Shown here: piece by piece, positions 28,227-62,354 of the stretch
Layout: every line of letters begins with the position of its first letter
How positions within the stretch are numbered: the stretch's first letter is position 1
DNA from: Macrostomum lignano
Taxonomy: Eukaryota
DNA: 64,000 nt
Direction of reading: 5' to 3'
Assembly: GCA_002269645.1 (NCBI GenBank)
Contig: NIVC01001462.1
Location: forward strand, 62,001 to 126,000
The notes under the pieces: model-generated
The model's database searches: none
The model's input: only the letters and a program-made list of their open reading frames with translations
What the model was told of the DNA's origin: nothing
Translations under genes and position numbers: made by a program

Positions 28227-28267
<41 letters not shown>

Positions 28268-31043: not shown

Positions 31044-31109
31044 GCGAGAGCATTCACTGCGGGATTGGGGGGATTAGTGCTACAGTGGCTTTATGGCGAT
31101 TCAATTAAT

Positions 31110-33470: not shown

Positions 33471-33578
33471 AAGTCTAAAAAAAGTTTTTTAACAAAAAGT
33501 ACACATAAAAACTAACAAAACAGATCTACTCTCAGCCTCTGTTCCAATCAATTTCGAATTTTCCATCTTCAGCCTAGA

Positions 33579-36424: not shown

Positions 36425-36489
36425 CTGGAAGATAGATTTTTTTCTCTGGAGGACTTAAAATTCAAACAATATTGTCCACACAGCAAGGC

Positions 36490-39605: not shown

Positions 39606-39861
39606 GGCTTAAAAGTGTTAAGTGTTATACGATAGGCTATTATAGGACCAAACAGCTTAGACAACTAATAATAAAATACGTTTTTAACAAGATCAATTCA
39701 CAGTCTCTAGAACGATGCGGGACTGTATATTATAATGATACAACATTAAGACGTTTATGTTTTTTGTTTGTTTCTCTTTCTCTAATCATTTTTAAGTCCA
39801 TCATCTATTGGGCGCAATCTCGTCGCTAAAAATGTTAACTTTATCGAACATGCACAATCTC

Positions 39862-40779
39862 CTACTGACGACTGAAGCCAAGTAGTATGAGAAAGATGTA
39901 GACAACATCCACGTAGATCTGCATAGCTCCGTAGACGTACTCCTCCTCGGATAGATCGTGCCTACGACCGCCGACAACGCGCTGGGTGTCGAAGATGAGG
40001 AACAGCACGAACAGCAGCGCCAGCAGGCCGCCATAGACGCAGTCAAGAATCTTGGCGGTCATTGAGAAATTCGGATCGCCCCTGTACACAAAGAAGGTGA
40101 CCAAGCAGGACAGTCCGAACAGGAACACCACCAGGCTAAAACCGAACAGCAAGCCGCTGCACATGGTGAAGTCGTAGCGAGTCTGCACAGCGAATAGGGT
40201 GACGCCAAGGCACACGGCGGCGGTGACGCCAAGGCACACGGCCACCGTGTTAGTCTGATAGCACGAAGCAATAACTCCAGTCATGAAGGACAAGCTAGCC
40301 GTGAAGATGGCCAAAGAAATAAAATTGCCAGGAAATTTACGACGCAGCGGTGTAATGCAGACCAGAGCAAAGTACATGATAATAAAGATTCCATAGGACA
40401 CGTGGAACAGCCACAGATTGGATCTGGCAAATTGTTTCACAGGTTTCACAGCCGAGAAAATGATCACAACAGTGAAGGTGACCAACAGTTGCGCAAACAG
40501 TATCAGATAGACTTTGCGGATGAAGCCACGCCGGATCTCTTTATTGTCGAGGCCGCGGATAGCGAATTCGCCAACTTCATTGGTGGCGCCAGATTCCACA
40601 TCACCAGTAGATCCAGGCTGGTTACTAAAGCCTTCATTTTTTATGCCCCCTGTACCCGAGCCCTGAGCCTGAGCAGCGCCAGCCTTTTGCGGACAGTCAG
40701 TGTAAGCTTCTGCCGGATATGGAGGCGGCTGCACCTCAACTTCATTGGAATAATTTTTCAAAGGCTGATCAGCAGACAT
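39862..40779 (-). CDS. Lifeguard/TMBIM paralog 2, intronless CDS (305 aa)
   Basis: IRRGFIRKVYLILFAQL, RRKFPGNFISLAIFT, QTRYDFT, FDTQRVVGGRRHDLSEEEYVYGAMQIYVDVV. Confidence 0.93.
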   Translation of the reverse strand: MSADQPLKNYSNEVEVQPPPYPAEAYTDCPQKAGAAQAQGSGTGGIKNEGFSNQPGSTGDVESGATNEVGEFAIRGLDNKEIRRGFIRKVYLILFAQLLVTFTVVIIFSAVKPVKQFARSNLWLFHVSYGIFIIMYFALVCITPLRRKFPGNFISLAIFTASLSFMTGVIASCYQTNTVAVCLGVTAAVCLGVTLFAVQTRYDFTMCSGLLFGFSLVVFLFGLSCLVTFFVYRGDPNFSMTAKILDCVYGGLLALLFVLFLIFDTQRVVGGRRHDLSEEEYVYGAMQIYVDVVYIFLILLGFSRQ

Positions 40780-43110
40780 GGTTACAATTGGTTTCAGTGT
40801 TTTTGTTATAACTTTAATCTGTTAGCAATAAGCTGAAGGATAGAATTGGTAAAAATTGGCATGTTAGGTTAGCATGATTAGCAATGTTACTTACTATAAT
40901 TCCTTTTTTTAAGTAGCCTAGCAAAATTGACACAGAGCAACCTCAAAAAAGGATTATTGTTGCCACAGTTTAGCAAAAAGTCAAAAATCCTTTATAACAG
41001 GTTGCTTGATTGCCTGACTAGGGTGGGGGGGGCTGGCTTGACTAAGTATTTTTCTGGTCTCTTGTGTGTGGCCCCTACTCCCATTGCATTGTCGCCCCTC
41101 AGATTAACCAGTAGGTGACACAGGGAGAAGGTGGCTAATGCCCCAACTGATAGCAATCCTAGGCAGTTGTCCCCTATCCATTATTTGCCTGTCACAGCAC
41201 TATACTTGGACTCAACCACAAGGATATCAGGATGGTAGCCATGACCCTCTTAGGCATTTCTACCACTAAGAAAAATACCCATTCTTTTAGTGATGACCTG
41301 TCTTTACTTACCTAGATTACCTAGATGTTTGCTTTAAAGAATTCTACCAGTTAAAGGCTACTAGACAAGCAACTATTTACCTCTACAACTCTTGCATAGG
41401 GGACCAAGTAGCAGACACTAATACTGTCAGATGTCCCTGGAGAAAAAAGCAATAACTACATATGGTTGCCTAGGCTTAATAGAATAGGTGCAACATTTTC
41501 CTATTATATCCAGATGCCTAGAGTATATTGTATCTAAGCCAATGCAAAAGAAAATTAAATTATTTAAATTTATTTTCTTATTTGGTCTTCAACTAGACTA
41601 ATTGCAATGTTAGTGAAAAAGCTGGTTTACCATTATAGAAATTAGAAATCTGTTTCATTATATATCATATAATATATTATCATTTATTTTAAATTTTATA
41701 TTTACATGTATCTATAAAAATAATAACTGTTTCTGTATTTCTTTGCTATATATAGACTCCCAAACAACTTTATTTTTTTACAACAAATTTTGTATCCACC
41801 CTAAACTTACTACAAAAATGTCTTAGGTTACCTTAGAATTTCCTAAGTTTAAGACTTCCATATACTAAAAATTGTCTTCTTACCTAAAAGTGCAAAAAAA
41901 CTGACAAAAAGTGCTATTTTTCACTAAATCCTTCATAGTGCTATTTCACTAACACCAATTATCTTTAAATTTGACACAAATAGTCTTCAACTAGTTAGAC
42001 ACAATTTTGTAAAATTCAAGTCTAAAAGTTAATCCTGATTGATGTTATGTACTTTTGAAGCTAGTTTGCTTTTTGTCATAAAAGCCAACTTAAACTTTGC
42101 TCACATTTACCTTCCTAATCTTGGCCTAGATGTGTAGGAGGTTTTAAAATTGGCTTAAATTTAGCTGCCATAAGTTTGCTCCACATAAAGACTTCAAACT
42201 TGATATAAAATGGGAGAAAAAAGAGGAAAAGGAAAGAGAAAGGAGGAAAGGGTCTAGGATTCTAAGAGATTTTTTGCCTAGCTTACTTTGTTATTATTGA
42301 TCAATAACTCTTCTTTAATCATGGCTAGACACCCTGCTGCAACCACTACCACTACTTTAATCCCTATTGCAGATGCAACTTTAAGCTAACAATGTGCAAT
42401 TTGATTATAATAATAGCCACCAACAAAGTGATAATTTATTAGTTGGCTATGTACCACCTACTGGCCAACCAACAATGCTGTGCCACCTATCCTAGGCAGC
42501 GCACTTGTACTTTTGCCATTGATGCACAAGTTGGCATGTTGGAATCCCACTGTCAATTGACTATTAAGTTGTATTATAAATTTGAATGAGTGCTCAGAGA
42601 GGGGTCAAGGGGCAGAGCCCCCATATACTAACATTAAGAAGTTTTATCAAAATGCTGCACTTATCAAAATAATTGACTATATAAAAGGGCTCCCTCTCTC
42701 TCTGGTATGAATCTGACCAGAGCTGCAGCAGTCAATTGGATAAGGTCTAGGTAGACAAATTAACTTATTTTTTAGGGCTAGCTGTGCACGGAAAGGGGTG
42801 TCAGACAGAGAGGTGCAGCTAAAGGTAGAAAATATTTTATGGCAGATGCAGTAAGGGTCTAGGTGGGTCTAGGGAATGATTGATAATTGATGGCTATAAA
42901 ATGTACCATAAGTGAGACAGCCTGAAAAAGTTTATTAAATTCCACGATAGTATACTGTCTAATTTATCTATCAGTCTTCAGTTCTTATCTCACAATCAGT
43001 TCTCTTATCTCCACAATGCAATGCCAGTTTTATGAGTGTAAAAGGAGCCCCCACCTCTCTAACTTGGAAATTTAAATATACTGCACATTGTTGTTGAGCT
43101 TCTATTTTTA

Positions 43111-43735
43111 CGAGGGGTGCACAAAAAGTCTTGGCAACTGGCTCATAACTTTTTAAATAAACGTTTAAACGTAACCATTTTTTAATCTCATAAATATAAC
43201 CATATTTTGCGTTTGTTCATAAATTTTCAGCTCATTGCATTGATTTTTTTGCTTCCTAGAGCATTTTGATTAATGTACAGTCTCGTTTTCAGCCTTCAAA
43301 TGGAAAATATCACTGCTGATCAGTGGAGATTTTATGTTTTCATGCAATCGCAGCTCGGAGAAAACGCCACCAAAATTCATGCCGAGCTAGTCCAAGTTGT
43401 AGCAGATCAAGCCCCTTTGTACCGCACTGTTGCCCATTGGATTGAACAGGTCAGTGCTGGTTGACGCTTCATGACCGACAGCCCTCATTTTGGGAGGCCA
43501 ATGACATCCGTGACCGAGCAGAACATTGTTGCTGTGCGACAGCTGGTGGATGAAGATTGCAATATCACTGTTGCACTACTTAGCCAGACAATCGGCATTT
43601 CTGATGGCAGTGTCCGAACCATCTTGCATGACCATCTTGGCCTCCGCAAGGTCACGGCCCGTTGGGTACCTCATGCACTGACAGCAGAGCAGAAGCAGGA
43701 GAGGGTTCGATGCAGCCAAGAATTTCTGCGATGCT
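43111..43735 (+). mobile_element. 5' half of a mariner element (pseudogenised)
   Basis: TA|CGAGGGGTGCACAAAAAGT TIR; HTH region and LRKVTARWVPHALTAEQK; stop at 43462 (likely CGA>TGA); catalytic domain missing. Confidence 0.88.
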
Positions 43736-44183
43736 TGAAACTACATGAAGCTAGCGTTGCTGTCGAGACAATTGCAAAGGCAACGGGGCACAAGGTAAGT
43801 CAAACTAAATAAAATGAGTTTATGCATATTTTTTGTAAATTAAAATCATATGCAATATATGAGTGTACATGTGTATTGTGTACACTACTTCACTATTTCT
43901 TTATAAAAATGCTTCCTTCTGCAGGTCAGCACTTCAGTTGAGCGCCACATCCATTAGGGGAAAAAGAGAGAGAGCAAAATGGCATAGATCAGCACCTGCC
44001 TAATGGAGTCACTTGCCAGTCAAATGGCTGGCTTCTCAAGCCCTTTATCTATGCCATTGGTGGCCACCAGAGAAGCTGGTGACACGGAAAAGATTCAAAA
44101 CCAAGCTGATGGTCACAAGACAATGAAAATAGTTGCTCATGAGTCATGGGGACACCAATGTAGTTGAGATTCACTTTAACTAG
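43736..44183 (+). pseudogene. Possible spliced Crypton-type tyrosine recombinase C-terminus, decayed
   Basis: KLHEASVAVETIAKATGHK|gtaagt...ttctgcag|VSTSVERHIH*GKKRESKMA*IS resembles the YR box-II TGH(K/R)S..S...YI motif; weak. Confidence 0.35.
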
Positions 44184-44560
44184 CAGGACTGCATTTATAT
44201 TTTCTTATGAAATCCATTTGTTAATTTTCAGTTTCAATGCTGGGAAAACCTGGAAAATGAAATTTAACTTAGCATAGACACCCTGTAATGGCATTTGTTT
44301 ATTTTTTAATTTGGTTTTATAAAACATTTAAATAAACTGTTTCTGAAAAGCTTTTGACATGTTACTACTGAACATCTTGAATAAATTGCATGAATAAAGC
44401 TTGTGCAGGAATGATATCCTGCATGCATAAGTGTGCAAGAATGAAATCTTGCATGCATGGTCAACCGACAATGTAGCTACCAAAATAGGAAAATGGTCAT
44501 TTCACTGATAGCTGCTACTAGGCATGCTTTCAATGCTAGACATAAGCATTAATCCAAAAG

Positions 44561-45100
44561 GGATCCTTCTTTGAGGCCAGTCATTTGCCTATGACCTAGC
44601 TAATCAACCTTATTTACTAGTGGGCTATGTATGCCAAGTAGGAAAATACTTGGCAGCGTTGCAAAAACATTGCTATTTAGACAATTGTGGACTAGCAAAA
44701 CTTCATCCAGGATATCTGCAGTTAGTACAAGACTACAATACTATCTACTACAGCTAAAAGAGCCTACTGTTGATATTAGAATTAATAAAAGCTATTTCTT
44801 TCACTACAGGAACTACCAAGACTAGTATTTACCATGTTAATAGGTTTCAGGGATAATTGAAAGGGGCTCTAACCATTGTATATATGATGATGGCTATATT
44901 GGATCATAGTGCAACCAATATCCTGCCACTTGTGCAATAGTATATTTTATCTAGGTTGCACATCATCACAGACAAGTGGTAGGCTTATAACTAGCTACCC
45001 AACCACTTGACTATAAATCATTGACTAAACTTCAAATTGATCTTACCAACCTAGATGTCATACAAACAACATAGAGAGCAAATAGGCCCATACTAAGGCT
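44561..45100 (+). pseudogene. Decayed Merlin/IS1595-family DDE transposase
   Basis: GSFFEASHLPMT*LINLIY*WA; INKS for IDES; *VSGIIERG for WVFGIIERG; DHSATNILPLVQ*YI...IITDKW*AYN*L; NH*LNF; HTNNIESK*. Confidence 0.85.
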
Positions 45101-46599
45101 TGCTTCAAGGCCATGCATGGAACTTCAAGGCCCTTTTCAATATGGATGCTGACCAATTTGGCAACAAATAAATTTGGTAACAGAAATTCAAAATGGACCA
45201 ATTCAGTCAAAGCAAATTTGGCAAAAATCTAGGCAAATTTAGTGATAATTAATGAAAGAAAAAATGGTATATAATTTGGATAATTCCTTTAATACAATTG
45301 TATTCTTAAATACATATTAGCTTTCCCTTGTCATTAAGTTTTTTATAGATTATTTATCCTTGTGAGTTTTAAAAGTCCTTTCCAAAAATGTTTGCTAATT
45401 TAAGGTTGGATGACATTGTAAGCAAAAATGTTTGGGACTTGAAAAACAATTTTCTTGTATGCCTAATAAGGTCTTTCTATTGGTTACAATGTTGGAAAAA
45501 GGGATTTGCAAAAATATGCCATGCAGAGAAAAATGACAAAATTAAAAAATGTCAAATGTCTCTTATTGTATGTACCACTATATTCTTGATGTGAAATGTC
45601 CAATTTAACAATACTTTTTTTGGTTAAACTTTATAAACTTTCATGAGCATTTTAAGAAAGCCTTTATTTCATATAATTTGTTTTAACTTGTCTTTAACTA
45701 TTGTAAAAGGCCCTTCTTGTTTTATGTACAAAATCATCTATCTATACTTATTTCAAACTTGCATAAAACAAAAAAAAATTTTGTTTTAATATTTGTATTT
45801 TTAGAAATATTTTTCCATTTTTTTGTTTTAAACAACAATGAAAGCTAATATAAATAGACAAGTTTTGGAGCCAGAAGAGGCAACTTGGTTTGCAGACTCA
45901 AGTCTCAAAGCAAGCATTAATAATAGTGAACATATAACAGTGAGTTTTCAAGAAATATTTAAGAAGTGTTTTTCAAGTTAATTATTTGCAGAGTAGAGTA
46001 AAATAGACCAAAGCATCTATAGTATATACTACTGAGAGGTAAAGTAGTAGAAGGAAACAAAGTAGATCTTAAATCAATATAGATAAAAATAACTAGAGGC
46101 TATGACCCTCTGATCTCAATAATGCCTAGGATTAGAAATACATGCAATACATATACCAATAGACCAATATACCACACAGGCCAAATTACTAGTAGAATGC
46201 TACCAGAATAATAGTAATTGCTACCAGAATAATAAAGAAAAATACTTGAAAGGGCTATATAGTATTCTAAGAATAATTTATAAACCAAATACTCACACTA
46301 ATACTTAGATAAATACCTAGACAAATACTTAGAGATATACTTAGACTAATTCTAAGAAAAATTTCTTAGACTTATTCTAAGATTGATAAACTTATCATTT
46401 ATTCATAGAATAGTCTTGGTGATTGGTGAAAGCTTGGTGAAAGCTACCAACATTAAGACATTTTATATAGAACAAAGTATAGCCTTAGTACAACTCAGTA
46501 ATAGCTTTAGGACAATTCATAAAGACAAAGGAATAACCCCTAGCATGTGTGGGTTCCCCAACAGATATTTTTTCTTTGAATTAATAATTCAAACAAAAA

Positions 46600-46830
46600 A
46601 TGAATTCATGTTACGGGATACATTCCTTACTCTGACGCCATATTCAGCTTTAAAAATTTGTAAGCAGAAGTTTTATGTCCCAAAGGAAAAAACATTGGCA
46701 CAAATGCAAAGTATGTCAAAAGACAAATTTATTTGGCATCCCTTACAAACACATTTTTGAAGCAAATATCTTAGGAAATACAATATGAAAGGCAATGTGT
46801 CTAAGATGTCATTGCAAAGCTGAGATATGC
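46600..46830 (+). pseudogene. Decayed MULE/Mutator-type SWIM zinc-finger region
   Basis: LTLTPYSALKICKQ, then frameshifted HKCKVCQKTNLFGIPYKHIF (CxC...GIPCxH with TGC>TAC). Confidence 0.55.
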
Positions 46831-47100
46831 ATCAAGAATTGATAAAAGTTTTAGAGCAAATGATTGAACCATTGTGATGCAGCAATAAATCAAAGTTTTG
46901 GTTGATCTTGGTTGAAGATCCTTGATCAACAAAAAGTAAATTATACTAATAATAGTAATATTATGTGGTAACTTAAGTTAGACTTGGTTTTACTCTGCTT
47001 TAGGCCTATACCTAGACTAGGGCATAGACCTAGACTTAAACCTTTTTATTTTGGTCAAAGTAGGCCTAGGCCCTACTGATCCCTATTGCAGCCAAGGTCT

Positions 47101-47325
47101 GAACCGCGCCGGACGCCCCCCTTTCCCGCGCCAGACATCTACCCGTACTGCGCCAGGGCCAGTCCCCAGGATCAGTGATTTGGTTCAATTAGTCAGTCAA
47201 TGGCTCGCCGCGCGCTGCGCGCCGCCGCCACACACCACGCCACCGCGCGCCGCCGCCACGCGCCGCGCCGCCGCCGCGCGCCGCGCCGCCACCAGTCCAA
47301 TCCGCGCCGGACGCCGTCCACGAAA
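47101..47325. promoter_or_regulatory. Isolated CpG island with CCAAT/ATTGG boxes; candidate promoter
   Basis: About 40 CpG in ~220 bp inside a CpG-free block; CCAAT at ~47297 and ATTGG at ~47333 and ~47374. Confidence 0.5.
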
Positions 47326-47430
47326 ATGGCCATTGGCTGCAATAGGGCTACTGATTGCTTAGGCCCTATGCTTATTGGCTTGCCTAAATTCATAAATTGC
47401 TATAAACTAATGTAATATAACTCTTAAGAC

Positions 47431-47548
47431 GGCTATCCTGTAGTTTCGCACATTAAATTATTACCCCCACCCCCCACCACCCTTGAAGTTGAATAGAGGG
47501 CGAAATAATTCCGTAAAATAATTTAACGTGCGAAACTACAGGATAGCC
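47431..47548. mobile_element. 118-bp MITE, ~30-bp TIRs, 8-bp TSD (Merlin- or hAT-like)
   Basis: GGCTATCCTGTAGTTTCGCACATTAAATTA ... TAATTTAACGTGCGAAACTACAGGATAGCC; CTTAAGAC at 47423-47430 and 47549-47556. Confidence 0.88.
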
Positions 47549-48285
47549 CTTAAGACTAAGTATATTGTAAGTGTAGCCTTGGCCTACTTCTTGGCCTTGC
47601 CAAACAAAGTCTAAACAGTCAAATAGGGCCTAGGCCTAGACCTATGCCAATAGACCTAGACTTAGCCTAGCTATAGGCTAGGCAGTTGTCAGTTGATCAT
47701 TAGTTAGATCAAATTGTACTTTGTAGGCCTAGGACTTATAAGAAGTAGCTAGCCTGACTAGACTTAAATAAGAGTTTTTCTTAGTTAAGGCCTACCATAC
47801 CAGTCTATCAATAATAAAACGGTGTGTCCTAGCCAAGGTCCAAGTCCAACATTGCCTAGGCAGCCTAGTATTACCTACAAATACGATGTCTGATGATACA
47901 CACTACACAGAATTAGAACTATAATTTTGCATAGGAGTTGTATAACTAACAACGTTATAGGCATAAACGTTAAAATTTAGGTCCTTTAAACATGTGAGTT
48001 ATTTTGTCACTCAAGTATTCTTCAAATATTTACAGATCCTGGTCGGCCTGGCTTGGGTCAATTATTAACTTTGGATAATTATTTTTACCTAAATTAAATT
48101 GAGCTTCAAGCTGCATTTTTTGTTCTTTGAAAGCTCCATATTTTATTTCTATTTTTAAGTTGTCGTTCATGAATATAAAACATTATAACGTCTGTTTTTT
48201 TTAATTTTTGCAGTTTCTGTTATAATTTGTATACTTTCTTAGAAAGTTTGAAATTCTTTCTTAGAAAGAAACCTTAAAAATTGGC

Positions 48286-49256
48286 CACCGGATCCGATGT
48301 TGACTTTCGTCACCTCTCTCACCTCATTATAGTAAGGGTAGGGGCCTAGGGTAGACACAAATATTTTAATCTGTAAAATGTTGGAAAGATTAACTTTTGC
48401 TGACACAGTTCGACTAGTGTTTTTGACTCAAATTGTCTGAAAGGGTATATTTTTTCAAACAGATGACCATGTGTATAATAATTTGTCCATTTTTGCAAAT
48501 TAATAGACATGATTGCTTAGACTAGGCAAGAGACAGAGACTGAGACTACTTGCAATTGCAGTGTGTCAGTGTATAGGCGAGTAGCTACAGTTGTGTTGCA
48601 CATCGTTTGCTTTAATTGATATTGATGTTAGCTGGCATTTTGTTTTGTCTAATCATGCCCTAGTCTTTGATTTTATATTGATTTGTCTAGGCCTACCATA
48701 AGCCTAGTTTGAAGGGAAAATGTATGCCTGGATTTCCCAGCATACGATACAACAAGGGTCTTACCATTTTCAATATATATCAGGGTATATCCCGATGTAC
48801 ATGACAGCGGACACATTGTGTCAAAGACAAATGACACATTTTTGTATTGGCATATCAACCTGGTATAGGCCTACAAATCAAATGAGGTTTTGTTATGTTT
48901 TCCAGCATTAAACCCAGTTTCATTCTATATTCAATTCAAAGTGACAAAATGAAAGAACATACAAAAGCAATAAATATAATCTAATAGCTAAAGCATAGGC
49001 AGGAATCTAATTTATTATACTTTTAGGACTTAATATAATTTTACTTCATTTGAAGTCTATAGCAGTTTTTTTAGGTGTTTTGTAGTCCATTGTGGTCCAT
49101 TGCATCCATTGCAGTGTTTACATGGACTATAAGACAATGGCTAGCCAGATTTCTAGTATTGAAACCTATTTTCTAATGCTAATAGCTATGGATCTAGCAC
49201 TAGAAATGGTAGGCCTATTCTAGCAGTGCAATTTATATATAATAAAGTAAAAACTT
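48286..49256. repeat. Long direct repeat copy 1 (971 bp)
   Basis: Nearly identical to 52548-53512 (two substitutions and one 6-bp indel seen). Confidence 0.95.
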
Positions 49257-49271
49257 GTCAAGCTAGGAACA

Positions 49272-52200
49272 CTCGCGTGCGTCAAGAGAAAAATAAAGTT
49301 TCGTAGCTCTGCGTTGAGTAGAAGTGTCTGTCAGCGAATGTCAAGCTGGACCCCCAAAATACACTACGGAGATAGGAACACAGTTTGCAGGTGAATAACT
49401 CGTACAGGCTTTAAGCTAGGGTGCTGATTTTTTACTTGCCAACGCATCTCGCGTGCGTCAAAAGAAAAATAAAGTTTTGTAGCTCTGCGTTGAGTAGAAG
49501 TGTCTGTCAGCGAATGTCAAGCTGGACCCCTAAAATACACTATGGAGATAGGAACACAGTTTGCAGGTGAATAACTCGTACAGGCTTTAAGCTAGGGTGC
49601 CGATTTTTGACTTGCCAACGCATCTCGTGTGCGTCAAGAGAAAAATAAAGTTTTGTAGCTCTGCGTTGAGTAGAAGTGTCTGTCAGCGAATGTCAAGCTG
49701 GACCCCCAAAATACACTACGGAGATAGGAACACAGTTTGCAGGTGAATAACTCGTACAGGCTTTAAGCTAGGGTGCTGATTTTTGACTTGCCAACGCATC
49801 TCGCGTGCGTCAAGAGAAAAAAAAAGTTTCGTAGCTCTGCGTTGAGTAGAAGTGTCTGTCAGCGAATGTCAAGCTGGACCCCCAAAATACACTACGGAGA
49901 TAGGAACACAGTTTGCAGGTGAATAACTCGTACAGGCTTTAAGCTAGGGTGCTGATTTTTGACTTGCCAACGCATTTCGCGTGCGTCAAGATAAAAATAA
50001 AGTTTCGTAGCTCTGCGTTGAGTAGAAGTGTCTGTCAGCGAATGTCAAGCTGGACCCTCAAAATACACTACGGAGATAGGAACACAGTTTGCAGGTGAAT
50101 AACTCGTACAGGCTTTAAGCTAGGGTGCTGATTTTTGACTTGCCAACGCATCTCGCGTGCGTCAAGAGAAAAATAAAGTTTCGTAGCTCTGCGTTGAGTA
50201 GAAGTGTCTGTCAGCGAATGTCAAGCTGGACCCCCAAAATACACTACGGAGATAGGAACACAGTTTGCAGGTGAATAACTCATACAGGCTTTAAGCTAGG
50301 GTGCTGATTTTTGACTTGCCAACGCATCTCGCGTGCGTCAAGAGAAAAATAAAGTTTCGTAGCTCTGCGTTGAGTAGAAGTGTCTGTCAGCGAATGTCAA
50401 GCTGGACCCCCAAAATACACTACGGAGATAGGAACACAGTTTGCAGGTGAATAACTCGTACAGGCTTTAAGCTAGGGTGCTGATTTTTGACTTACCAATG
50501 CATTTCGCGTGCGTCAAGATAAAAATAAAGTTTCGTAGCTCTGCGTTGAGTAGAAGTGTCTGTCAGCGAATGTCAAGCTGGACCCCCAAAATACACTACG
50601 GAGATAGGAACACAGTTTGCAGGTGAATAACTCGTACAGGCTTTAAGCTAGGGTGCTGATTTTTGACTTGCCAACGCATCTCGCGTGCGTCAAGAGAAAA
50701 ATAAAGTTTCGTAGCTCTGCGTTGAGTAGAAGTGTCTGTCAGCGAATGTCAAGCTGGACCCCCAAAATACACTACGGAGATAGGAACACAGTTTGCAGGT
50801 GAATAACTCATACAGGCTTTAAGCTAGGGTGCTGATTTTTGACTTGCCAACGCATCTCGCGTGCGTCAAGAGAAAAATAAAGTTTCGTAGCTCTGCGTTG
50901 AGTAGAAGTGTCTGTCAGCGAATGTCAAGCTGGACCCCCAAAATACACTACGGAGATAGGAACACAGTTTGCAGGTGAATAACTCGTACAGGCTTTAAGC
51001 TAGGGTGCTGATTTTTGACTTACCAACGCATCTCGCGTGCGTCAAGAGAAAAATAAAGTTTCATAGCTCTGCGTTGAGTAGAAGTGTCTGTCAGCGAATG
51101 TCAAGCTGGACCCCCAAAATATACTACGGAGATAGGAACACAGTTTGCAGGTGAATAACTCGTACAGGCTTTAAGCTAGGGTGCTGATTTTTGACTTGCC
51201 AACGCATCTCGCGTGCGTCAAGAGAAAAATAAAGTTTCGTAGCTCTGCGTTGAGTAGAAGTGTCTGTCAGCGAATGTCAAGCTGGACCCCCAAAATACAC
51301 TACGGAGATAGGAACACAGTTTGCAGGTGAATAACTCGTACAGGCTTTAAGCTAGGGTGCTGATTTTTGACTTGCCAACGCATTTCGCGTGCGTCAAGAT
51401 AAAAATAAAGTTTCGTAGCTCTGCGTTGAGTAGAAGTGTCTATCAGCGAATGTCAAGCTGGACCCCCAAAATACACTACGGAGATAGGAACACAGTTTGC
51501 AGGTGAATAACTCGTACAGGCTTTAAGCTAGGGTGCTGATTTTTGACTTGCCAACGCATCTTGCGTGCGTCAAGAGAAAAATAAAGTTTCGTAGCTCTGC
51601 GTTGAGTAGAAGTGTCTGTCAGCGAATGTCAAGCTGGACCCCCAAAATACACTACGGAGATAGGAACACAGTTTGCAGGTGAATAACTCGTACAGGCTTT
51701 AAGCTAGGGTGCTGATTTTTGACTTGCCAACGCATCTCGCGTGCGTCAAGAGAAAAATAAAGTTTCGTAGCTCTGCGTTGAGTAGAAGTGTCTGTCAGCG
51801 AATGTCAAGCTGGACCCCCAAAATACACTACGGAGATAGGAACACAGTTTGCAGGTGAATAACTCGTACAGGCTTTAAGCTAGGGTGCTGATTTTTGACT
51901 TGCTAATGCATCTCACGTGCGTCAAGAGAAAAATAAAGTTTCGTAGCTCTGCGTTGAGTAGAAGTGTCTGTCAGCGAATGTCAAGCTGGACCCCCAAAAT
52001 ACACTACGGAGATAGGAACACAGTTTGCAGGTGAATAACTCGTACAGGCTTTAAGCTAGGGTGCTGATTTTTGACTTACCAACGCATCTCGCGTGCGTCA
52101 AGAGAAAAATAAAGTTTCATAGCTCTGCGTTGAGTAGAAGTGTCTGTCAGCGAATGTCAAGCTGGACCCCCAAAATACACTACGGAGATAGGAACACAGT

Positions 52201-52306
52201 TTGCAGGTGAATAACTCGTACAGGCTTTAAGCTAGGGTGCTGATTTTTTACTTGCCAACGCATCTCGTGTGCGTCAAGAGAAAAATAAAGTTTCGTAGCT
52301 CTGCGT
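49272..52306. repeat. 176-bp satellite, 17 full units plus a partial, followed by a diverged monomer to ~52400
   Basis: Unit starts at 49272, 49448, 49624 ... 52264. Confidence 0.97.
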
Positions 52307-52547
52307 GTATTTTAAGCCGTTTTGTTGAGTTGCATAATAATACACTAAGGAGATAGGAACAAACTTTATATGTGAATAATTTGTACAGTCTATTTTTTAA
52401 TGCCGAGATATTTTACGTAGTTTTTTTTCTTGATTGCGTCAAAGTTTTTGTAAAATTTTAAAGCGTTTCGTTCAAGTAAAGAAAAGTTACAGCGGCTTTG
52501 TTAAAATTTGAATGTGAATCTGAATGTCAATCGGGAAATGAATACGT

Positions 52548-53512
52548 CACCGGATCCAATGTTGACTTTCGTCACCTCTCTCACCTCATTATAGTAAGGG
52601 CAGGGGCCTAGGGTAGACACAAATATTTTAATCTGTAAAATGTTGGAAAGATTAACTTTTGCTGACACAGTTCGACTAGTGTTTTTGACTCAAATTGTCT
52701 GAAAGGGTATATTTTTTCAAACAGATGACCATGTGTATAATAATTTGTCCATTTTTGCAAATTAATAGACATGATTGCTTAGACTAGGCAAGAGACAGAG
52801 ACTGAGACTACTTGCAATTGCAGTGTGTCAGTGTATAGGCGAGTAGCTACAGTTGTGTTGCACATCGTTTGCTTTAATTGATATTGATGTTAGCTGGCAT
52901 TTTGTTTTGTCTAATCATGCCCTAGTCTTTGATTTTATATTGATTTGTCTAGGCCTACCATAAGCCTAGTTTGAAGGGAAAATGTATGCCTGGATTTCCC
53001 AGCATACGATACAACAAGGGTCTTACCATTTTCAATATATATCAGGGTATATCCCGATGTACATGACAGCGGACACATTGTGTCAAATGACACATTTTTG
53101 TATTGGCATATCAACCTGGTATAGGCCTACAAATCAAATGAGGTTTTGTTATGTTTTCCAGCATTAAACCCAGTTTCATTCTATATTCAATTCAAAGTGA
53201 CAAAATGAAAGAACATACAAAAGCAATAAATATAATCTAATAGCTAAAGCATAGGCAGGAATCTAATTTATTATACTTTTAGGACTTAATATAATTTTAC
53301 TTCATTTGAAGTCTATAGCAGTTTTTTTAGGTGTTTTGTAGTCCATTGTGGTCCATTGCATCCATTGCAGTGTTTACATGGACTATAAGACAATGGCTAG
53401 CCAGATTTCTAGTATTGAAACCTATTTTCTAATGCTAATAGCTATGGATCTAGCACTAGAAATGGTAGGCCTATTCTAGCAGTGCAATTTATATATAATA
53501 AAGTAAAAACTT
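52548..53512. repeat. Long direct repeat copy 2 (965 bp)
   Basis: See copy 1; offset 4262 bp. Confidence 0.95.
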
Positions 53513-56467
53513 AATAATGGCTAATAGATATTAAACCCAAGATTTTTAGGGGTTGCAAAATATTGAGATAGAGCAGGGGCCAAGAAAATAAATTTTTGGC
53601 AAATAAAAGTCAGTTGGTTGGTTGCTGTTGCTGTCACCAATAAAGTGGGACGGTTTTAAACTTTGAATTTCTACCAACATTGAGATTGAGTTTGCACAAA
53701 TAATTCTAAATAATTGTTTAGACAAATCATAGGCCTAACAAAATTTTCTCCTGTTTACTCTAGCTACCAGGGTTTTCAATTCTGGGAAGAAGGTAGTCAT
53801 AATCACAATTGAGTAATCATCAATGGGCACAGTTGTTTAGATAGTAGACACCAAGGTCTTGATATCATAAGTTAATGTATGTCAATTTGCTTCGTCTATT
53901 TCTTTTAGTAGAGTAGTACTGCTACCAAAATTTTATATTATAAAATGTTGAAATCTTTTAGCTCACTTGGAGTTGAGATTAATTTGGTTGTTTAATACCC
54001 TATTGACAAATGACTTAAGATAAGCTATAATGCTTTGACTAACTAATGAAAATAAATATTGGTTATTGCTGATTATTAATGGCTAAATAAGAATTGCTCA
54101 TATAGCAGTTTAATAAAAAGGCTATTAGTTGTTGTTAAAACTGACAAAAGATAGATTTCAGGCAATGCCAAGGGTGCAAATTAATGAGCTATCAAACTAT
54201 TAAAACAAAACTAGAAACATAAAAAATGAGGGACAAGGAAAATGAGCATAGAAAAAAAACATGACAGATAAGTTTGGTTAATAAATATGGTACGCAGAAT
54301 AAAATAATAGAATGGGGCAGGAGATGGCTCAGCTAGTAGGGCAGGCAATGGGGCAACTAAAAGGAAAACAAGGCCAATGGAACCAGCAAGAAAAGCAAGG
54401 GCCAAACAAAGGCAAGGAGGGGCCAAAAGAGGGAACATAAGAGGTCAATAGAGGGGGAAACAAATGGTTATGACAGATTTGAGTCCAGAAGCCAGAAACT
54501 TTCCCAAATGGTAGTCCTCGCTACCACAACATCATATTTTTGAAATAATATCTATGCTTTTAAGATAATAGATAAAATTGAGAATCAAAATTAAGTCTAG
54601 TTAAGATCTAAAAGTGCTTATTTCATAATTTTTTAATGTGTAAAATGATAATAAGTTTCTAATAAAAGGAAAAACAAATATTATATTTTATAGGCCCTAA
54701 TATTAAACTTGTTAGGCCTTAGTCACTTGTTTTGATGTTTATCTAATGTAGATATAATAATATTATAGTAAACAATAGTCACAGTTACTAATCTTGACTT
54801 TTTAGATCTAAAACTAAGATCAGCATAGAAAAAGTGCCAAGACTCTATTAAAAGCCATAGTTTGGAAGGCAACTTATTTGCTAGGATTTTTCAGCAAATA
54901 ACAACTAACAAGGCAGGGTAGAGGGCCTACTTGCCTTTTTCAATGTATGTTATGTAAGTATATCTTAGCATATAGATACATGACACAGCAGAAACATTGT
55001 GTTAATAATATATTTTTTAGTTCTAGTATACAAACAAGGTCTTATAATTTTTGCCATTAGACCCAGTATATAATAATATATAATCCAAACTATAAAGTAG
55101 ATTCTATTACATGGAAGATAACTAACTGCCTTCAGTAGGAAGCATTGCCAAATCTATAGCCATCTAGAACTTTAGCTATTACTCCTTAATAGAGCTAATG
55201 CAACATTTTAATAGGCCTAGCTATTGTTAAGTTAAGTATCCTGCATTTTTTAATTTTTGTTTTATTTAGAAAATAGTTTATTTAAACTTAACAACTTTTT
55301 TACTTTTATTTTGTACTTTAGAGTAGATTAGGCTATTTCAAAGTATTAAAGTAGATTTAAGTTAAAATTTAAGGGTATTACCTGGCATTTTTTGGGACCA
55401 AAAGTTTTTTGTCTTAAATATATTTTGGGATATGCATGCCATGATCTTAATTTATAGGCCTAATAAAAAAATTTAAAGTTGAACTTCAAATGTAGTTAAA
55501 CTGAATATATAATAGTGCATCATAAAAAATAAGAAAAAAATCTTATAATTTTTATTACCTACCCAATCTTAAAAAAATTATTTTTATAGACAAGTAAGAT
55601 TATCAAGTAAAATAACAAATTTACTAAAATGTCTTTCAAAATCTTTTTAGAGTCCTAAAATATAGTATATGGCATCATATTTATTTATAATTATTTTACA
55701 TTTTTGTTTCTTTTAAAGTATGTATTTCAACAGTCTACTAAATAACTAAAAGTTAATAAACAAGTTTTTAAAGGAGCAAACTAATTTGCATAAAGAATTA
55801 AGGGAAAGTTAATTTGCATTGGTCAAAACTAGGTTGCATAGACAATATTATTTAACATGCTTGGGCGCAACCTAGGGTTCACATGTAAGTTGCTATTATA
55901 CAGAATAGTAGTCACATGACTGCTCTCAGCCAATAGCGACTTACATATGTGTGTTGCCAATAGAAATGGCTGGGTGAATCCCAAGGTTGTGCATGTATGT
56001 TATTTAAGTAAATTGTTACTCATATTAACACTGAAATTGAGGCTAAATTTAATGTAAAGTATTAAAACTGTCGTATTTTTCTTAGAACTTCTTATCAAAG
56101 AATAGCTCTAGGTTTCTGCCATTTGTGGCATTGTGGATGTATTCATTTTTCCATAAAATGACAAATCCTTCTAATAACCTTACATATTAACATTAACTTG
56201 CATTTCTGTTCCTTAACCTTAAAATAATATGATCTATGATGTACAAAACATTTCCCTTGCTCATTTTGTGTCTTGTCCTAAATATTAGACTCCTAGACTA
56301 GATATATAAAACAACAATAAAAGAAGTTCTTTGTAGCACCAATCTATACTTTTTTATTTAATTTATTCAGGTGTTAGACCAATTCAAGGACTTGGTTTAA
56401 ATTTTCTATCTGCTTGTTTCATTCATGCACATTTGAAGAAAAGATTTTTGACAAGACTTTAATCATC

Positions 56468-58647
56468 ATGTCTTTACTGGAGACTTATGAGCAGCAGTTT
56501 GGCATAACTATTGCCGAAATTACTAGTAAAATTAATCAGATATCTCGAATTTCCGATCCAGGTATATGTTTCCTATTGGCTAATCTATTGTATAAAAACT
56601 AATTGACCCTAAAGTCCCTGATTTGCACTTGACAGTACACCTTAGAGATTAGATGACATATTAGAATATATCAGCATAACACCTGGCATCACCCCTGGAT
56701 GATATCAAATAGCCCTGACATCACCCCTAGATAACATCAAAAGCACGTGACATCACCCCTAGATAGCATCAAAAGCACGTGACATCACCCCTAGATAACA
56801 TTAGAAGCACCTGACATCACCCCTAGATAACATTAGAAGCACCTGACATCACCCCTAGATAACATTAGAAGCACCTGACATCACCCCTAGATAGCATCAA
56901 AAGCACGTGACATCACCCCTAGATAATATTAGAAGCACCTGACATCACCCCTAGATAGCATCAAAAGCACGTGACATCACCCCTAGATAACATCAGAAGC
57001 ACCTGACATCACCCCTAGATAGCATCAAAAGCACGTGACATCACCCCTAGATAACATTAGAAGCACCTGACATCACCCCTAGATAACATTAGAAGCACCT
57101 GACATCACCCCTAGATAACATTAGAAGCACCTGACATCACCCCTAGATAGCATCAAAAGCACGTGACATCACCCCTAGATAATATTAGAAGCACCTGACA
57201 TCACCCCTAGATAGCATCAAAAGCACGTGACATCACCCCTAGATAACATTAGAAGCACCTGACATCACCCCTAGATAATATTAGAAGCACCTGACATCAC
57301 CCCTAGATAGCATTAGAAGCACCTGACATCACCCCTAGATAACATCAGAAGCACCTGACACCCCGCAGACGAACGCCAGTCAGCGGAGTCCCAAGCCGAG
57401 CGCCTGTTTGCAGAAGCTCGCGAAACTCTGGAACAATTGGAATTGGAGACTCGCTCGCAGCCGCCCTCAATCAGGCAGAAGTACTCCACTAGATTGCAGA
57501 GTTACACCGCTGAGCAGAAAAAGTTGGAGAATGATTTCAAACAGGCTAAAGACTTCGCGCAGAGGCAGCAGCAACGAGATGAATTATTCTCTTCAGGTAA
57601 GGTTTTAATATCAGTTTTTTGTGTCTCATATCCCTCATGTCCTTCACGGCTTCACGAAAGGTAATGCACTGGGTTCCTTCAGGGAGGGTGACACCCAGAT
57701 CCTCAGGGATTGTGATTTCCTCAGATCCTTCAGGGAGTGTGATGCCCTCAGATCCTTTAGGGAGTGTGATGCCCTCAGATCCTTCAGGGAGTGTGATGCC
57801 CTCAGATCCTTCAGGGAGTGTGATGCCCTCAGATCCTTCAGGGAGTGTGATGCCCTCAGATCCTTTAGGGAGTGTGATGCCCTCAGATCCTTCAGGGAGT
57901 GTGATGCCCTCAGATCCTTTAGGGAGTGTGATGCCCTCAGATCCTTCAGGGAGTGTGATGCCCTCAGATCCTTTAGGGAGTGTGATGCCCTCAGATCCTT
58001 CAGGGAGTGTGATGCCCTCAGATCCTTTAGGGAGTGTGATGCCCTCAGATCCTTCAGGGAGTGTGATGCCCTCAGATCCTTTAGGGAGTGTGATGCCCTC
58101 AGATCCTTCAGGGAGTGTGATGCCCTCAGTTGTTACTGATTAAGTAGCAGAAGACTTGTGTTATTGTTGCAACCACTCACACTGACAACAAAGTTAAATA
58201 AACTCATCAATAAAAACCGCAGGCGCCGACGATAACAATTATCACGCGGCCTCTGAGTACCGGGCGCGCCTGCTTGACAACACGGAACGGTTAGAACGAA
58301 CCGGCCGGCGCATGGAAGAAGGCCTCGGCAGTGTGTATGAGACCGAGCGAGTTGGCAGGGACATTCTGGCTGACTTGGCTAGCCAACGAGAGACCCTGAC
58401 CCGCAGTAGGGACAAGCTTAAATCCACTAATCAAGACCTGGGCTCAAGCAGTCGCATACTGGGCGGTATGATGCGCCGAGTGGTGCAGAATCGAGCTCTG
58501 CTGCTGCTCATTCTCGGCGTCATGCTGCTGGTGATCGGGGCCGTGCTGTACGTGGCATTGAAGCCGCGCACTCTTCATATTGGCGCCGATTCGGCAACTT
58601 CGACAACTCCGACTAAACTGCCAGTGGCTCCGGCGCCTGTGCCGTGA
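56468..58647 (+). CDS. VTI1A: Qb-SNARE VTI1A; exons 56468-56561, 57369-57596, 58223-58647
   Basis: ETYEQQFGITIAEITSKI, LEQLELETR, RARLLDNTERLERTGRR, ETERVGRDILADL..QRETL.R.R..L, LG.SSRILGGMMRRVVQNR plus TM helix; phase-1 introns. Confidence 0.92.
56680..57360. repeat. 32-bp minisatellite, VTI1A intron 1
   Basis: GACATCACCCCTAGATAACATTAGAAGCACCT, period 32. Confidence 0.95.
57700..58128. repeat. 27-bp minisatellite, VTI1A intron 2
   Basis: CCTT(C/T)AGGGAGTGTGATGCCCTCAGAT, period 27. Confidence 0.95.
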
Positions 58648-58849
58648 TTAGCGGTTGAATAACCTACCGTATTTATTATCAGTCACTTAAATCGCTTGCG
58701 CACTGCAGGAGGTATGGATTATTGATTTTTGTCTGTCTGCAAACTTTTATTGAAGTCGAGATTTTTTAATTCATTGTCAAATCTTTTCATTTATGTGTCC
58801 GATAGAAGTTATCATCTGCTGCTTAAAATAACAATCTAAACCCACCAAT

Positions 58850-59465
58850 GAGAATCGCCCCTTATCTACTATATGATCATCGCCCCTTATCTACTATATG
58901 AGCATCGCCCCTTATCTACTATATGAGAATCGCCCCTTATCTACTATATGAGAATCGCCCCTTATCTACTATATGAGAATCGCCCCTTATCTACTATATG
59001 AGCATCGCCCCTTATCTACTATATGAGAATCGCCCCTTATCTACTATATGAGAATCGCCCCTTATCTACTATATGAGCATCGCCCCTTATCTACTATATG
59101 AGAATCGCCCCTTATCTACTATATGAGAATCGCCCCTTATCTACTATATGAGAATCGCCCCTTATCTACTATATGAGAATTGCCCCTTATCTACTATATG
59201 AGAATCGCCCCTTATCTACTATATGAGAATCGCCCCTTATCTACTATGTGAGAATCGCCCCTTATCTACTATGTGAGAATCGCCCCTTATCTACTATATG
59301 AGAATCGCCCCTTATCTACTGTGAGAATCGCCCCTTATCTACTATGTGAGAATCGCCCCTTATCTACTATATGAGAATCGCCCCTTATCTACTATATGAG
59401 AATCGCCCCTTATCTACTGTGAGAATCGCTCTTATCTACCATATGAGAATCGCCCCTTATCTACC
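58850..59465. repeat. 25-bp minisatellite downstream of VTI1A
   Basis: GAGAATCGCCCCTTATCTACTATAT, period 25. Confidence 0.95.
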
Positions 59466-60611
59466 ACAAAAACTGCTGTTTTAACCATCGAATCTCATTT
59501 CGGTGTCAGATAAAACTGTTTGCGTCTTTTGCTGACTTCTTCATAATCCCAACTATGAAGTGACACTAAATTTTAAGTAAATTATTGATCTTGATTCTTC
59601 GCTTACTAGAAGTAGTAATGTGAGCTTATTTTTGTGTCGGTTTTAATTAGTTCAGTGTCTTTAGTCTGCAAAGCTCTATAGTATGTGTACATAGGTAACA
59701 GTATATGTAAATCAAATTTGTTTTAATATAAAATTGCACTTTACCTTATCTACACTTACAGTCTGTTTATTTTATACATATAGATAGTTCTCTGTGTTGT
59801 GCGAGACACTCTACTCAAGTGCACAAATATCTTATTGGCGTAATGATAACTATTCTATTATGCTTGTTTGCCTCAGTTAATTCTACCTGTATCTGTATCT
59901 GTAACAAGTTTCCACACCGAATCCAAGTCTAGCCATAGCGCTACTCCACTCCCTCCTCACCAGCCTAAGTTGGGGCCTCCTTGTGACGCAAATTGCATCC
60001 TTCACAGTTTAAGACGAGAACCGCTAGCGTATAGTGTGAATTGCGTCACTTGCGTCATTTGAGATCTGAGAAGGCACTAGTTTCGGTGTGGAAACTTTAC
60101 TCATATTGCTGAGTGTACTTTTGTGTCACGTGTCTGTCTGTACCCTGTGTTTGCCATTTTGTCTACACATGCATTAGAAATATAATTGAGCATATAAAGT
60201 GATCGAAAACCAAAATAATTGGTTGAATTCTCTGTGTACTTGCAATTGCAATAAATCAATGCGATACTACTGAGACAGTGGTTTGTGCTTTATTTGTCAT
60301 CACTATTATTCATTCGTAGTCGCTAAAGAGAACGAAAATCTGCTCTTGCGCTATTGTTAGTAGTTTTATAGGTTTGTTAAAGCTTTACGGGGTTTCCTAT
60401 AATTACCCAGAGCAGTTGAGTTCTCAAGGAAGCATAATTGTGTTTGTTAATTTCATCTGCGTTATTCAGGATGTTCGTGTTTAACTTAGAAACTTAGGTA
60501 GGTTAAGGAGAAATTAATTAGTGTAATGATTATTTTGGTTGCTCAAGAGGCGAGGAGGTCTGCCTTAACAACGGGGAGTCAAGCCCAAGCACATCATAAG
60601 AAATAGTAGCG

Positions 60612-60850
60612 ACAGGGGCCATTCTGCCGCGCCGACTCCCCTGAGCAGGCACACAATATACGTACACAGTCTTCGCAAACAGGCACACACAGGAGTGTAC
60701 AGCTGCCCTAACTTTATTTATCGTTAGGCATGTGCACATTAATGTATGTGCCTTGGGGGTTGATGAGATTTCAATGTAGCCCCAAATTAATGTGACTGCA
60801 AATTGGAATCGAGCCTGGGCCGCTGGCACAGCAGAGCACCGCGCCAGACC
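60612..60850 (-). mobile_element. SINE family A, deleted copy
   Basis: Shares GCCGACTCCCCTGAGCAGGCACAC...CCCCAAATTAATGTGACTGCA...ATCGAGCCTGGGCCGCT with other copies. Confidence 0.75.
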
Positions 60851-62114
60851 ATCACTAGACCCTGTTAAACTATCTTTTTTACAATGAATAAAACCACTAC
60901 TGTTATTGTACAAAAAAGTTTTTGCGTATTGAGAGGCATAGCTTATTTTTAAAGCTATAGCTGTCAGAATGAAGGTTGCGCCACATACAGTTTCATATAT
61001 AAAAAGTTAATAGGTTAGGTTCAATTTTACGTCTTTGGAAAATCATTTTCTTTCTGCTTGGCATTGGTTTTCGCATTGTAACTTAGCTTACAAGCAACGT
61101 ACCAATCTCAGCCAACCCATAGCGAGTAATGTTAGCCATAGCTGGGTTTTGACCATAGACAGTAGGACCTAGTGGCTAACTTCGGGCTACCATATAGGCT
61201 CTTACAAGCTCCGATCTGACCAAGAAAAAACTTGTCTATGGCCTCAAGCAACCGAAATTTCTCGTCTTTTTAGCGTTGAACAATCAGATTCGCTTTATCG
61301 TTGAACAATTATGGATTGTTCAACGCCGATCAAAAGCGTACATCTATGAGACAATGTTGATGCGTATGTGGTTTGATCATAGACAATGATTAAGTTTCAC
61401 GAGTGGCGAAGCAAACATGATGCGAAGCATCCCTCAAACCACATACGCAACTATGTCCATACTCCCTGGACCTCATGATTTTTCCATAATAAATACGATC
61501 ATAGGCCCTATCTATAATACACAGTGACTAATCTATCATGGCCAAAATGTCCTAACATGGTTAACGGCTACCCTCGTACACGCACGCCGTCATGACGAAG
61601 CCTGTACTCTAACTTTTGTACACACAAGACGGTTAAAAATCAGAGCGTCACTTTCTAAAATTAGCAACGGCCCAAGCAGGGACAAGGGGGAGAATTTTTG
61701 AGTACTTATTTGAGCGTGCTCAAGCGGACCAAAAGGAGAGTCGATGGGTAGAGGGTAGCAAAGGGCAAGGGACGGCGAACAAATACTCGTACATATACAC
61801 ATGTAGATTGGACTGGTCTGAGAGGGGAAGGGCTGTGTGGGGAGACGGGTAGGGAGTTGACAACGGGCGGGCTCTTCACTCTTCCCCCTCTCTACCCCGC
61901 CCCGGCGAGGGAGGAGCGGAGGGTTGCTGGGGACTTGACTCGCATTTGGTATATTAATACACTGCTCTATATTAGACTGTGTAGACACTCAGCGAGATAG
62001 AAGTCTATCATAATAAACTGTCTTTACTTTAACAGGCCTGAGAGGCCACAAGAGAAACTGTAAGACATTCAACTTAAAAAAAATATTAATAACAAACTAT
62101 TTTATTGTTCACCA

Positions 62115-62292
62115 ATGCAGTCAATCAAGTGCGTGGTAGTTGGCGACGGAGCCGTGGGCAAGACCTGCCTGTTAATCTCGTACGCTACAAACCAGTTCCC
62201 CGAAGAGTACATACCCACAGTGTTCGACACCTACAGTGCCAACGTGATGGTGCAGCAAAAGTCCATCAACCTGTGTCTGTGGGATACTGCCG
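62115..62292 (+). CDS. Rac-like Rho GTPase, first coding exon (rest not found in window)
   Basis: [23 protein letters not shown]...YIPTVFD.YSANV...LWDTAG|gtaaga. Confidence 0.9.
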
Positions 62293-62354
62293 GTAAGATA
62301 GTCGTATATTTTTATGCATTAGTTACTCCCTAACTCAAATTATGAGGGCACCCT

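Follow-up and report, generated by a model that had tools for sequence, protein, structure and literature searches.

In methylated repeats such as the Alu and satellite DNA of vertebrates, most transitions in copies of recent origin fall at CpG, and the old surrounding DNA is strongly depleted of CpG with a surplus of TpG and CpA. In Neurospora and other fungi, repeat-induced point mutation (RIP) introduces C>T and G>A changes into duplicated DNA at high density, with CpA as a preferred context. Methylation at CpA, whether as the DNMT3-type non-CpG methylation (mCH) of vertebrates or as disputed in Schistosoma mansoni, predicts extra C>T changes at CpA, and a preference for CAC or CAG is a trait of DNMT3-type non-CpG methylation in animals. 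Satellites shaped by unequal exchange, as in the library model, keep a constant unit length, carry higher-order duplications and form large heterochromatic blocks. Here we compare with these systems a 176-bp satellite of the free-living flatworm Macrostomum lignano, which forms a 3-kb array between two direct repeats of ~970 bp in a 64,000-nucleotide stretch of DNA (assembly Mlig_3_7, GCA_002269645.1, contig NIVC01001462.1, positions 62,001 to 126,000 of the forward strand; hereafter the window). An earlier note on this stretch had proposed that the young satellite records an ongoing process of C>T mutation at both CpG and CpA. Our counts bear out the CpG component, whereas for CpA they show a weak though consistent trend, which the array cannot establish.

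Tandem Repeats Finder reports a single array (49272-52306) with a period of 176, 17.2 copies, 97% matches and 0% indels, and slicing it every 176 bp yields 17 full units of constant length and leaves 43 bp, without any shift of register (Table 1). The array departs from its majority consensus at 32 places, or ~1% of its positions. C>T or G>A accounts for 25 of these departures and T>C for one, and the other six are transversions, which fall at only three unit positions, in agreement with the earlier description of mostly C>T/G>A changes and few transversions. The individual sites named in that description are also right in position and context, both at CpG (49543, 50282, 51063, 51562, 51907 and 51915, beside which seven further CpG departures exist) and at CpA/TpG (49531, 50494, 51022, 51122, 51442, 51904 and 52078); 50494, 51022 and 52078 represent one unit position (167). 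Since repeated variants have been spread by duplication of a 528-bp block, visible as two runs of three units with the same ordered variants, each combination of unit position and base was counted once as a distinct event, and the 32 departures thereby collapse to 20 distinct events. The array interior has no open reading frame (ORF) of at least 60 amino acids. ARAGORN found no tRNA in the array or interior, and Rfam returned only a sub-threshold chance match to a CRISPR repeat model at 48252-48288; an origin of the satellite from a tRNA, 5S or other RNA gene was rejected on these results. No further copy of the satellite or of the ~970-bp repeat was found within the 64-kb window by blastn, and a metagenome scan with a 31-mer of the monomer gave no match.

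Table 1. Features of the satellite locus and its surroundings (positions within the window; GC, fraction of G+C; o/e, observed over expected ratio)
Feature	Position	Strand	Remarks
Lifeguard/TMBIM gene	39862-40779
CpG-depleted intergenic DNA, left	40950..47072	.	CpG o/e 0.26 falling to 0.10; control for the putative methylated compartment
Left direct repeat R5 (~970 bp)	48286..49256	+	AT-rich (GC 0.35), CpG-poor (o/e 0.31)
Linker GTCAAGCTAGGAACA, 15 bp	49257..49271	+	Between R5 and the first monomer; resembles monomer positions 67-79
176-bp satellite array	49272..52306	+	17.24 units, GC 0.45, CpG o/e 0.96
Higher-order duplication	49976..51031	+	Units 5-6-7 and 8-9-10 with the same ordered variants in the per-unit variant list: 1T+17T, then 131A, then 167A
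Relic monomers, ~1.4 copies	52307..52547	+	Strongly diverged, AT-rich (GC 0.29); adjoin the array; from alignment to the consensus (blastn 84% over 50 bp)
Right direct repeat R3	52548..53512	+	Holds both derived substitutions: 52558 G>A at CpG, 52601 T>C making CpA
CpG-depleted intergenic DNA, right	53513..56400	.	CpG o/e 0.11; extends to the VTI1-like gene

Three paralogous loci of the same assembly were retrieved by means of protein anchors (the lifeguard and VTI1-like genes). The sister locus on contig NIVC01000739.1 (A) has the same repeat-array-relic-repeat structure with 8.24 units of 176 bp, and the locus on contig NIVC01000621.1 (B) has a single ~970-bp repeat without the array, both outer junctions being conserved. 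The flanks adjacent to the array differ by only ~0.3% between the window and A, and the copy numbers are 17.24 and 8.24. In the fourth paralogue, on contig NIVC01000036.1, we noticed a 172-bp tandem repeat of 2.8 copies (6288-6762 of the retrieved locus), which is a distant homolog of the 176-bp monomer (score ~4.9 standard deviations above shuffles). Its distance from the lifeguard paralogue is 3.2 kb and its orientation is reversed; the satellite family is therefore older and dispersed. In several respects the locus resembles satellites shaped by unequal exchange, namely in its constant unit, its 3-unit higher-order duplication, the two-fold difference in copy number that separates the sister loci, and the presence of diverged monomer relatives both adjoining the array and at another paralogue. 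It is unlike them in being a small interstitial array inside direct repeats, and in lacking locus-specific homogenization.

CpG sites are the preferred target of change in the array. With events counted once, transitions have occurred at 8 of the 18 consensus CpG sites and at 8 of the 63 other C/G sites (odds ratio (OR) = 5.5, one-sided P = 0.006; ~3.5-fold), and adding the array of A leaves this difference in place (8/18 versus 9/63, P = 0.01). Broken down by context, the distinct events fall on 8 of 18 CpG, 5 of 24 CpA/TpG, 3 of 39 CpC+CpT and 1 of 95 A/T sites, beside three transversions. C/G sites outside CpG have also changed by transition more often than A/T sites (8/63 versus 1/95, P = 0.003). 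Non-CpG C>T events outnumber T>C events by 8:1 in the array (9:2 with A), an excess that is significant against the genic baseline but not against the intergenic one, where the per-site ratio is 2.04 (P = 0.05-0.09).

The same preference for CpG is found in the intergenic DNA around the array and is absent from the neighboring genes. We defined an intergenic compartment (40950-48285 and 53513-56400) and a genic compartment (29862-40949 and 56400-63993). Polarized transitions are found at 7 of 22 CpG sites in the former compared with 18 of 1764 (1.0%) non-CpG C (OR = 45, P = 6×10−9), whereas in the latter 8 of 770 CpG sites have changed compared with 1.3% of non-CpG C (OR ~0.8). In accordance with this, the old DNA near the array (40950-47072, the ~970-bp repeats and 53513-56400) has CpG o/e of only 0.10-0.31 and CpA+TpG o/e of 1.07-1.28, whereas CpG o/e is ~0.9 in the lifeguard (TMBIM) coding sequence and in the Tc1-like ORFs and 0.54 in the VTI1 gene region. 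CpG hypermutability restricted to intergenic DNA suggests that germline methylation is targeted to intergenic and repeat DNA and spares gene bodies, which would be the reverse of the usual invertebrate pattern. It is also evident that the locus agrees with methylated repeats of vertebrates both in the concentration of transitions at CpG in recently amplified copies and in its CpG-depleted surroundings. It differs from them in that the putative methylated compartment would be intergenic and repeat DNA only, the gene bodies of the window being without CpG hypermutability; neither the global methylation of vertebrates nor the gene-body methylation of usual invertebrates matches this pattern. DNMT1 and DNMT3 are reported to be retained in M. 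lignano together with low-level 5-methylcytosine, and as of 2022 the genomic methylation pattern was described as unknown for any free-living flatworm (PMC11292947; PMC9246332). The window offers a natural contrast. Around the array, CpG in intergenic and repeat DNA is ~30-45 times more mutable than other C, and in neighboring genes it is not hypermutable, which would indicate that this free-living flatworm directs germline methylation to repeats or intergenic DNA. We further noticed, amid the CpG-poor intergenic DNA, a 275-bp block (47073-47347) with a GC content of 69.5% and CpG o/e of 1.28, which the sister contig, otherwise 98.5% identical, lacks.

The proposed enrichment at CpA is no more than a weak trend when homogenized variants are counted once. 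Events at CpA/TpG and at CpC+CpT amount to 5/24 and 3/39 (OR = 3.2, one-sided P = 0.13, two-sided P = 0.24); both arrays combined give 5/24 and 4/39 (OR = 2.3, P = 0.21), and raw occurrences give 7/411 and 5/670 (P = 0.12). With events counted once the difference is therefore not significant (P = 0.13-0.21), which in a statistical sense is the outcome that the earlier note had itself named as a refutation, although the trend remains. The CpA context had been picked from three possible ones outside CpG with the data already in view. The five CpA events comprise three CAA, one CAG and one CAC, with 8 CAA, 8 CAG, 6 CAC and 2 CAT sites available; in these very small numbers there is no preference for CAC or CAG. 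The combined CpG and CpA process of the earlier note is thus upheld in its CpG enrichment and its dominance of C>T, and not in its CpA enrichment. The main value of the present analysis is this correction: with its 20 independent events, a 3-kb array is not enough to prove a new context of mutation, and the enrichment claimed for CpA should not be taken over as a result. RIP can be rejected despite the likeness of C>T/G>A changes on duplicated DNA with CpA named as a context. The host is an animal, the dominant target is CpG, and CpA is not significantly enriched; the density of change in the array is ~1% in contrast to the heavy mutation of RIP, and the relic monomers, which show mostly transversions, have no TpA build-up.

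Controls outside the array bear on the same question, and they do not agree with one another. When each event is counted once per array, the 24 minisatellite arrays of the window show 0.55 transitions per site at CpG, 0.31 at CpA, 0.42 at CpC and 0.19 at CpT, so that no CpA excess is seen (OR = 1.1). The opposite change, T>C, reaches 0.30 events per site at TpA and 0.07-0.12 at TpC, TpG and TpT (4.2-fold over TpC+TpT, P = 0.0003), and it is also raised at TpA in the unique DNA of the genic compartment (2.1-fold, P = 0.011). For a second control, the window, A and B were aligned over 15,997 sites of unique DNA, where they lie 1.74%, 3.35% and 2.65% apart in pairwise comparison. Here C>T changes affect 1.52% of CpA and 1.03% of CpC+CpT sites (OR = 1.48, P = 0.15), T>C changes affect 1.26% of TpA sites, and the flux is nearly equal in the two directions, with 30 CpA>TpA and 29 TpA>CpA events. 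When changes are left unpolarized, pyrimidine-A (YpA) sites differ by a transition between the window and A 1.64 times as often as YpC+YpT sites do (P = 0.003). Genic DNA has no CpA excess (OR = 1.2), and pooling all strata gives an OR of 1.34 (P = 0.12). These results indicate a neighbor effect at pyrimidine-A steps that is bidirectional overall and accounts for part of the CpA trend. The old flanks are not depleted of CpA; their CpA+TpG o/e, by our own estimate from base composition, is about what complete decay of CpG alone would add.

We consider it probable, with some reserve, that the array is an ordinary non-coding satellite in a CpG-methylated intergenic domain, which changes by CpG decay together with a modest neighbor effect. 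Inside a 4.26-kb repeat-array-repeat structure (hereafter R-X-R), which is found in two of the three subgenome copies, unequal exchange or replication slippage would have multiplied one monomer variant of an older, dispersed family of 172-176-bp units. Since that amplification the units would have gathered mainly C>T changes, several times more often at CpG than elsewhere, presumably through deamination of 5-methylcytosine. The remaining C>T changes outside CpG could reflect a general GC-to-AT pressure that the AT-rich intergenic region exerts on a GC-richer newcomer, together with the modest pyrimidine-A effect, which elsewhere in the window raises C>T at CpA as well as T>C at TpA.

Several observations weigh against this reading. 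The ratio of transitions to transversions in the array (17:3) is above that in nearby unique DNA (150:95, P = 0.05). In the intergenic flanks, CpA>TpA changes are found at 11 of 686 sites and CpC+CpT changes at 7 of 1078 (OR = 2.5, P = 0.086), and the reverse change, TpA>CpA, is not raised there (6/1135), the two opposite fluxes being 11 and 6 events. Pooling the array with the intergenic flanks gives an OR of 2.4 with a nominal, post hoc P value of 0.04, the OR for CpA is above 1 in every data set, and all four of the intergenic CpA>TpA events that can be checked against the fourth paralogue are correctly polarized.

The same figures are what would be expected if a second C>T process acted at CpA beside CpG in the methylated repeat and intergenic compartment, through DNMT3 non-CpG methylation or a context-biased deaminase, with the array recording it. 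The trend has the predicted direction in the array, with or without that of A, and in the flanks, the 1.64-fold excess of YpA transitions between sister loci agrees with it, and CpA-context methylation in Schistosoma mansoni (PMC3710501) and dominant non-CpG methylation in Taenia solium (PMC10658182) have been claimed, though both claims are disputed. We nevertheless regard such a process as rather unlikely. The array by itself gives no statistical support, and the pooled P value of 0.04 comes from a context and a compartment that were both picked after seeing the data. The 11 flank events all fall on the lineage of the window, about one third of whose changes are mis-polarized: the fourth paralogue contradicts 14 of the 43 changes that three-way polarization makes private to this lineage. 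Since three-taxon polarization is unreliable for such changes, the unpolarized counts are given above, and in the intergenic subset polarized four ways the CpA and CpC+CpT counts are 6/163 and 5/291 (OR = 2.2, P = 0.21). Furthermore, the excess is found neither in the minisatellites nor in genic DNA, the flux in unique DNA is equal in the two directions overall, the old neighboring DNA has not lost CpA over the long term, the CAC/CAG preference of animal mCH is missing, and one of the two substitutions between the flanking repeats (52601) goes in the wrong direction. The wider proposal that M. lignano methylates intergenic and repeat DNA and not gene bodies, that CpA and CpG are both modified and decay to T there, and that young repeats record the joint signature, seems quite unlikely as a whole; if true, the joint signature would be sequence-based support for the disputed CpA-context methylation of flatworms. 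The CpA question is testable in M. lignano, which has thousands of young pairs of long terminal repeats (LTRs) and of tandem arrays, three subgenome copies by which changes can be polarized, and existing long reads.

Comparison of the two sister arrays shows that much of the variation is inherited. The array of A has nine variant types, six of which are also found in the window array: 3T, 31T, 32A and 172T at CpG, 167A at TpG, and the transversion 162T. The register that fits best pairs units 3-4-5 of A with units 10-11-12 of the window (167A, then 32A, then none), and unit 8 of A with unit 15 of the window (172T). Because these variants are common to both arrays, three of them in a common register, they predate the split of the loci, and at least three variants of the window array are thus older than that split. 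Mean pairwise monomer divergence is 1.96% within the window array, 1.68% within A and 1.81% between the arrays; diversity within arrays is about the same as that between them, and it follows that there has been no locus-specific homogenization. That a CpA bias is ongoing is therefore not shown, the sharing of six of the nine variant types placing them before the split. The word young, also used of the satellite, needs qualification: in unique DNA this locus and its sister copy differ by 1.74%, a value close to the divergence among the monomers.

The assembly itself is a possible source of distortion. Mlig_3_7 was assembled with Canu from PacBio continuous long reads (CLR) and polished with Pilon using Illumina reads mapped with Bowtie2 (PMC5730564), and the sequenced line has three subgenome copies at ~2% single-nucleotide divergence, with 93% of read pairs mapping to multiple places and 36% of the assembly length in chimeric scaffolds (PMC10733133). 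Short-read polishing of near-identical monomers and arrays might accordingly have placed, copied or erased substitutions, in which case neither the counts nor the variants common to the two loci would be reliable, and the sharing of variant types between the two arrays would fit such an effect. It was also observed that the window lineage has 2-5 times more private changes than A (window 29862-63993 compared with the sister contigs), which would fit it as well. On the other hand, the 25 monomers of the two arrays are all exactly 176 bp long with their A5, T5 and C5 runs intact, which is unusual for a poorly resolved CLR consensus, and the common register of the shared variants looks like descent and not like random cross-mapping. 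Errors of polishing stem from variants that are present in the reads, and nothing about them should favor C>T or CpG. We consider it distinctly unlikely that the variant pattern has been materially distorted by assembly; although the counts rest on assembled sequence, artifacts would not alone create a transition bias focused on CpG. The genealogy varies along the locus, the window and A differing by ~0.3% near the array with B 9-12% away, and A and B being identical at 56400-58847. Such a shifting genealogy suggests recombination or gene conversion among the subgenome copies, or chimerism of the assembly.

The two direct repeats that flank the array are 99.8% identical, with 2 mismatches and one 6-bp indel (48822-48827) in 971 columns of a blastn alignment. 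The mismatches are G/A at 48296/52558 (CG/CA) and T/C at 48339/52601 (TA/CA). They were polarized by aligning all four repeat copies of the two loci, B serving as outgroup at the site where it could be aligned (52558). The A at 52558 is derived, and is a G>A transition at CpG. At 52601 the C is derived, because the other three of the four copies carry T, and it creates a CpA. Both substitutions had been said to fit the CpG and CpA process; their sites and contexts are correct and 52558 does fit, whereas 52601 runs in the opposite direction. At a further site (48449/52711) both copies of the window have A, and both copies of A as well as B have C, as would be expected if gene conversion had acted between repeats within a locus.

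It is possible to read two such repeats around a 3.3-kb interior as a mobile element, LTR-like or of another type with terminal direct repeats, that has the satellite as its interior, the third paralogue (B) being a solo repeat left by recombination. B indeed has exactly one repeat with both outer junctions conserved, and the satellite family also occurs elsewhere, as the 172-bp repeat of the fourth paralogue in opposite orientation. We find this very improbable. The repeat starts with CACCGG and ends with AAACTT, the flanking sequences are TTGGC and AATAA, and the interior has neither an ORF of at least 60 amino acids nor a tRNA or Rfam match, no search having been aimed at a primer-binding site or polypurine tract. 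An LTR element with a satellite interior was accordingly rejected, having no TG..CA ends, no target-site duplication and no ORFs. The lack of any further copy in the window also argues against mobility. Finally, for the single repeat of B, aligned sites in the adjoining flanks give a divergence of 9-12% (17-19% when BLAST identity with gaps is used), compared with 0.2% between the repeats here, and an old element would therefore need continuous gene conversion. Relative to B, with its single repeat, the R-X-R structure is derived, or else it has been lost in B. Candidate origins are a circular repeat-plus-array molecule integrated by homologous recombination, template switching, or an older structure that gene conversion kept uniform and that B lost.

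The linker between R5 and the first monomer has a local alignment to the monomer whose score is reached by 72 of 500 shuffles, and its resemblance to the monomer is only suggestive; microhomology at the junction of repeat and array was rejected as a sign of template switching, as the alignment scores are no better than those of shuffles. Most differences between the relic monomers and the consensus are transversions, and changes at CpA (4/28) are no more frequent in them than those in the comparison contexts (6/40), so that the relics were rejected as a scar of ancient CpA decay. They keep 9 CpGs in 241 bp (o/e 1.89) though the surroundings have o/e of 0.1-0.3, which is odd for old sequence in a CpG-hypermutable domain.

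Elsewhere in the window, at least 24 minisatellite arrays with units of 18-32 bp lie between the exons of nearly every gene (9904-37506 and 56680-63220). A 28-bp family (GCCCAGCAACTGAGGATCTGGGAGGCTG) recurs at 9904-10664, 24731-25040 and 36493-37506. Reportedly, 15% of the M. lignano genome consists of tandem and simple repeats (PMC5730564). On the minus strand, a 790-amino-acid ORF with a KANSL2-type zf-C3Hc3H domain (26268-28640) runs in frame through a 21-bp minisatellite, read as (DEKPTDQ)n, and through a (CTGT)n tract, read as (TDRQ)n; the annotated products of its paralogues have 909 and 832 residues. At 38442-39477 and at 630-1490 we have identified a Tc1/mariner-like transposase split over two overlapping ORFs, with helix-turn-helix (HTH) domains in the first and DDE_3 in the second, and a reverse-transcriptase fragment, all of which have near-normal CpG content.

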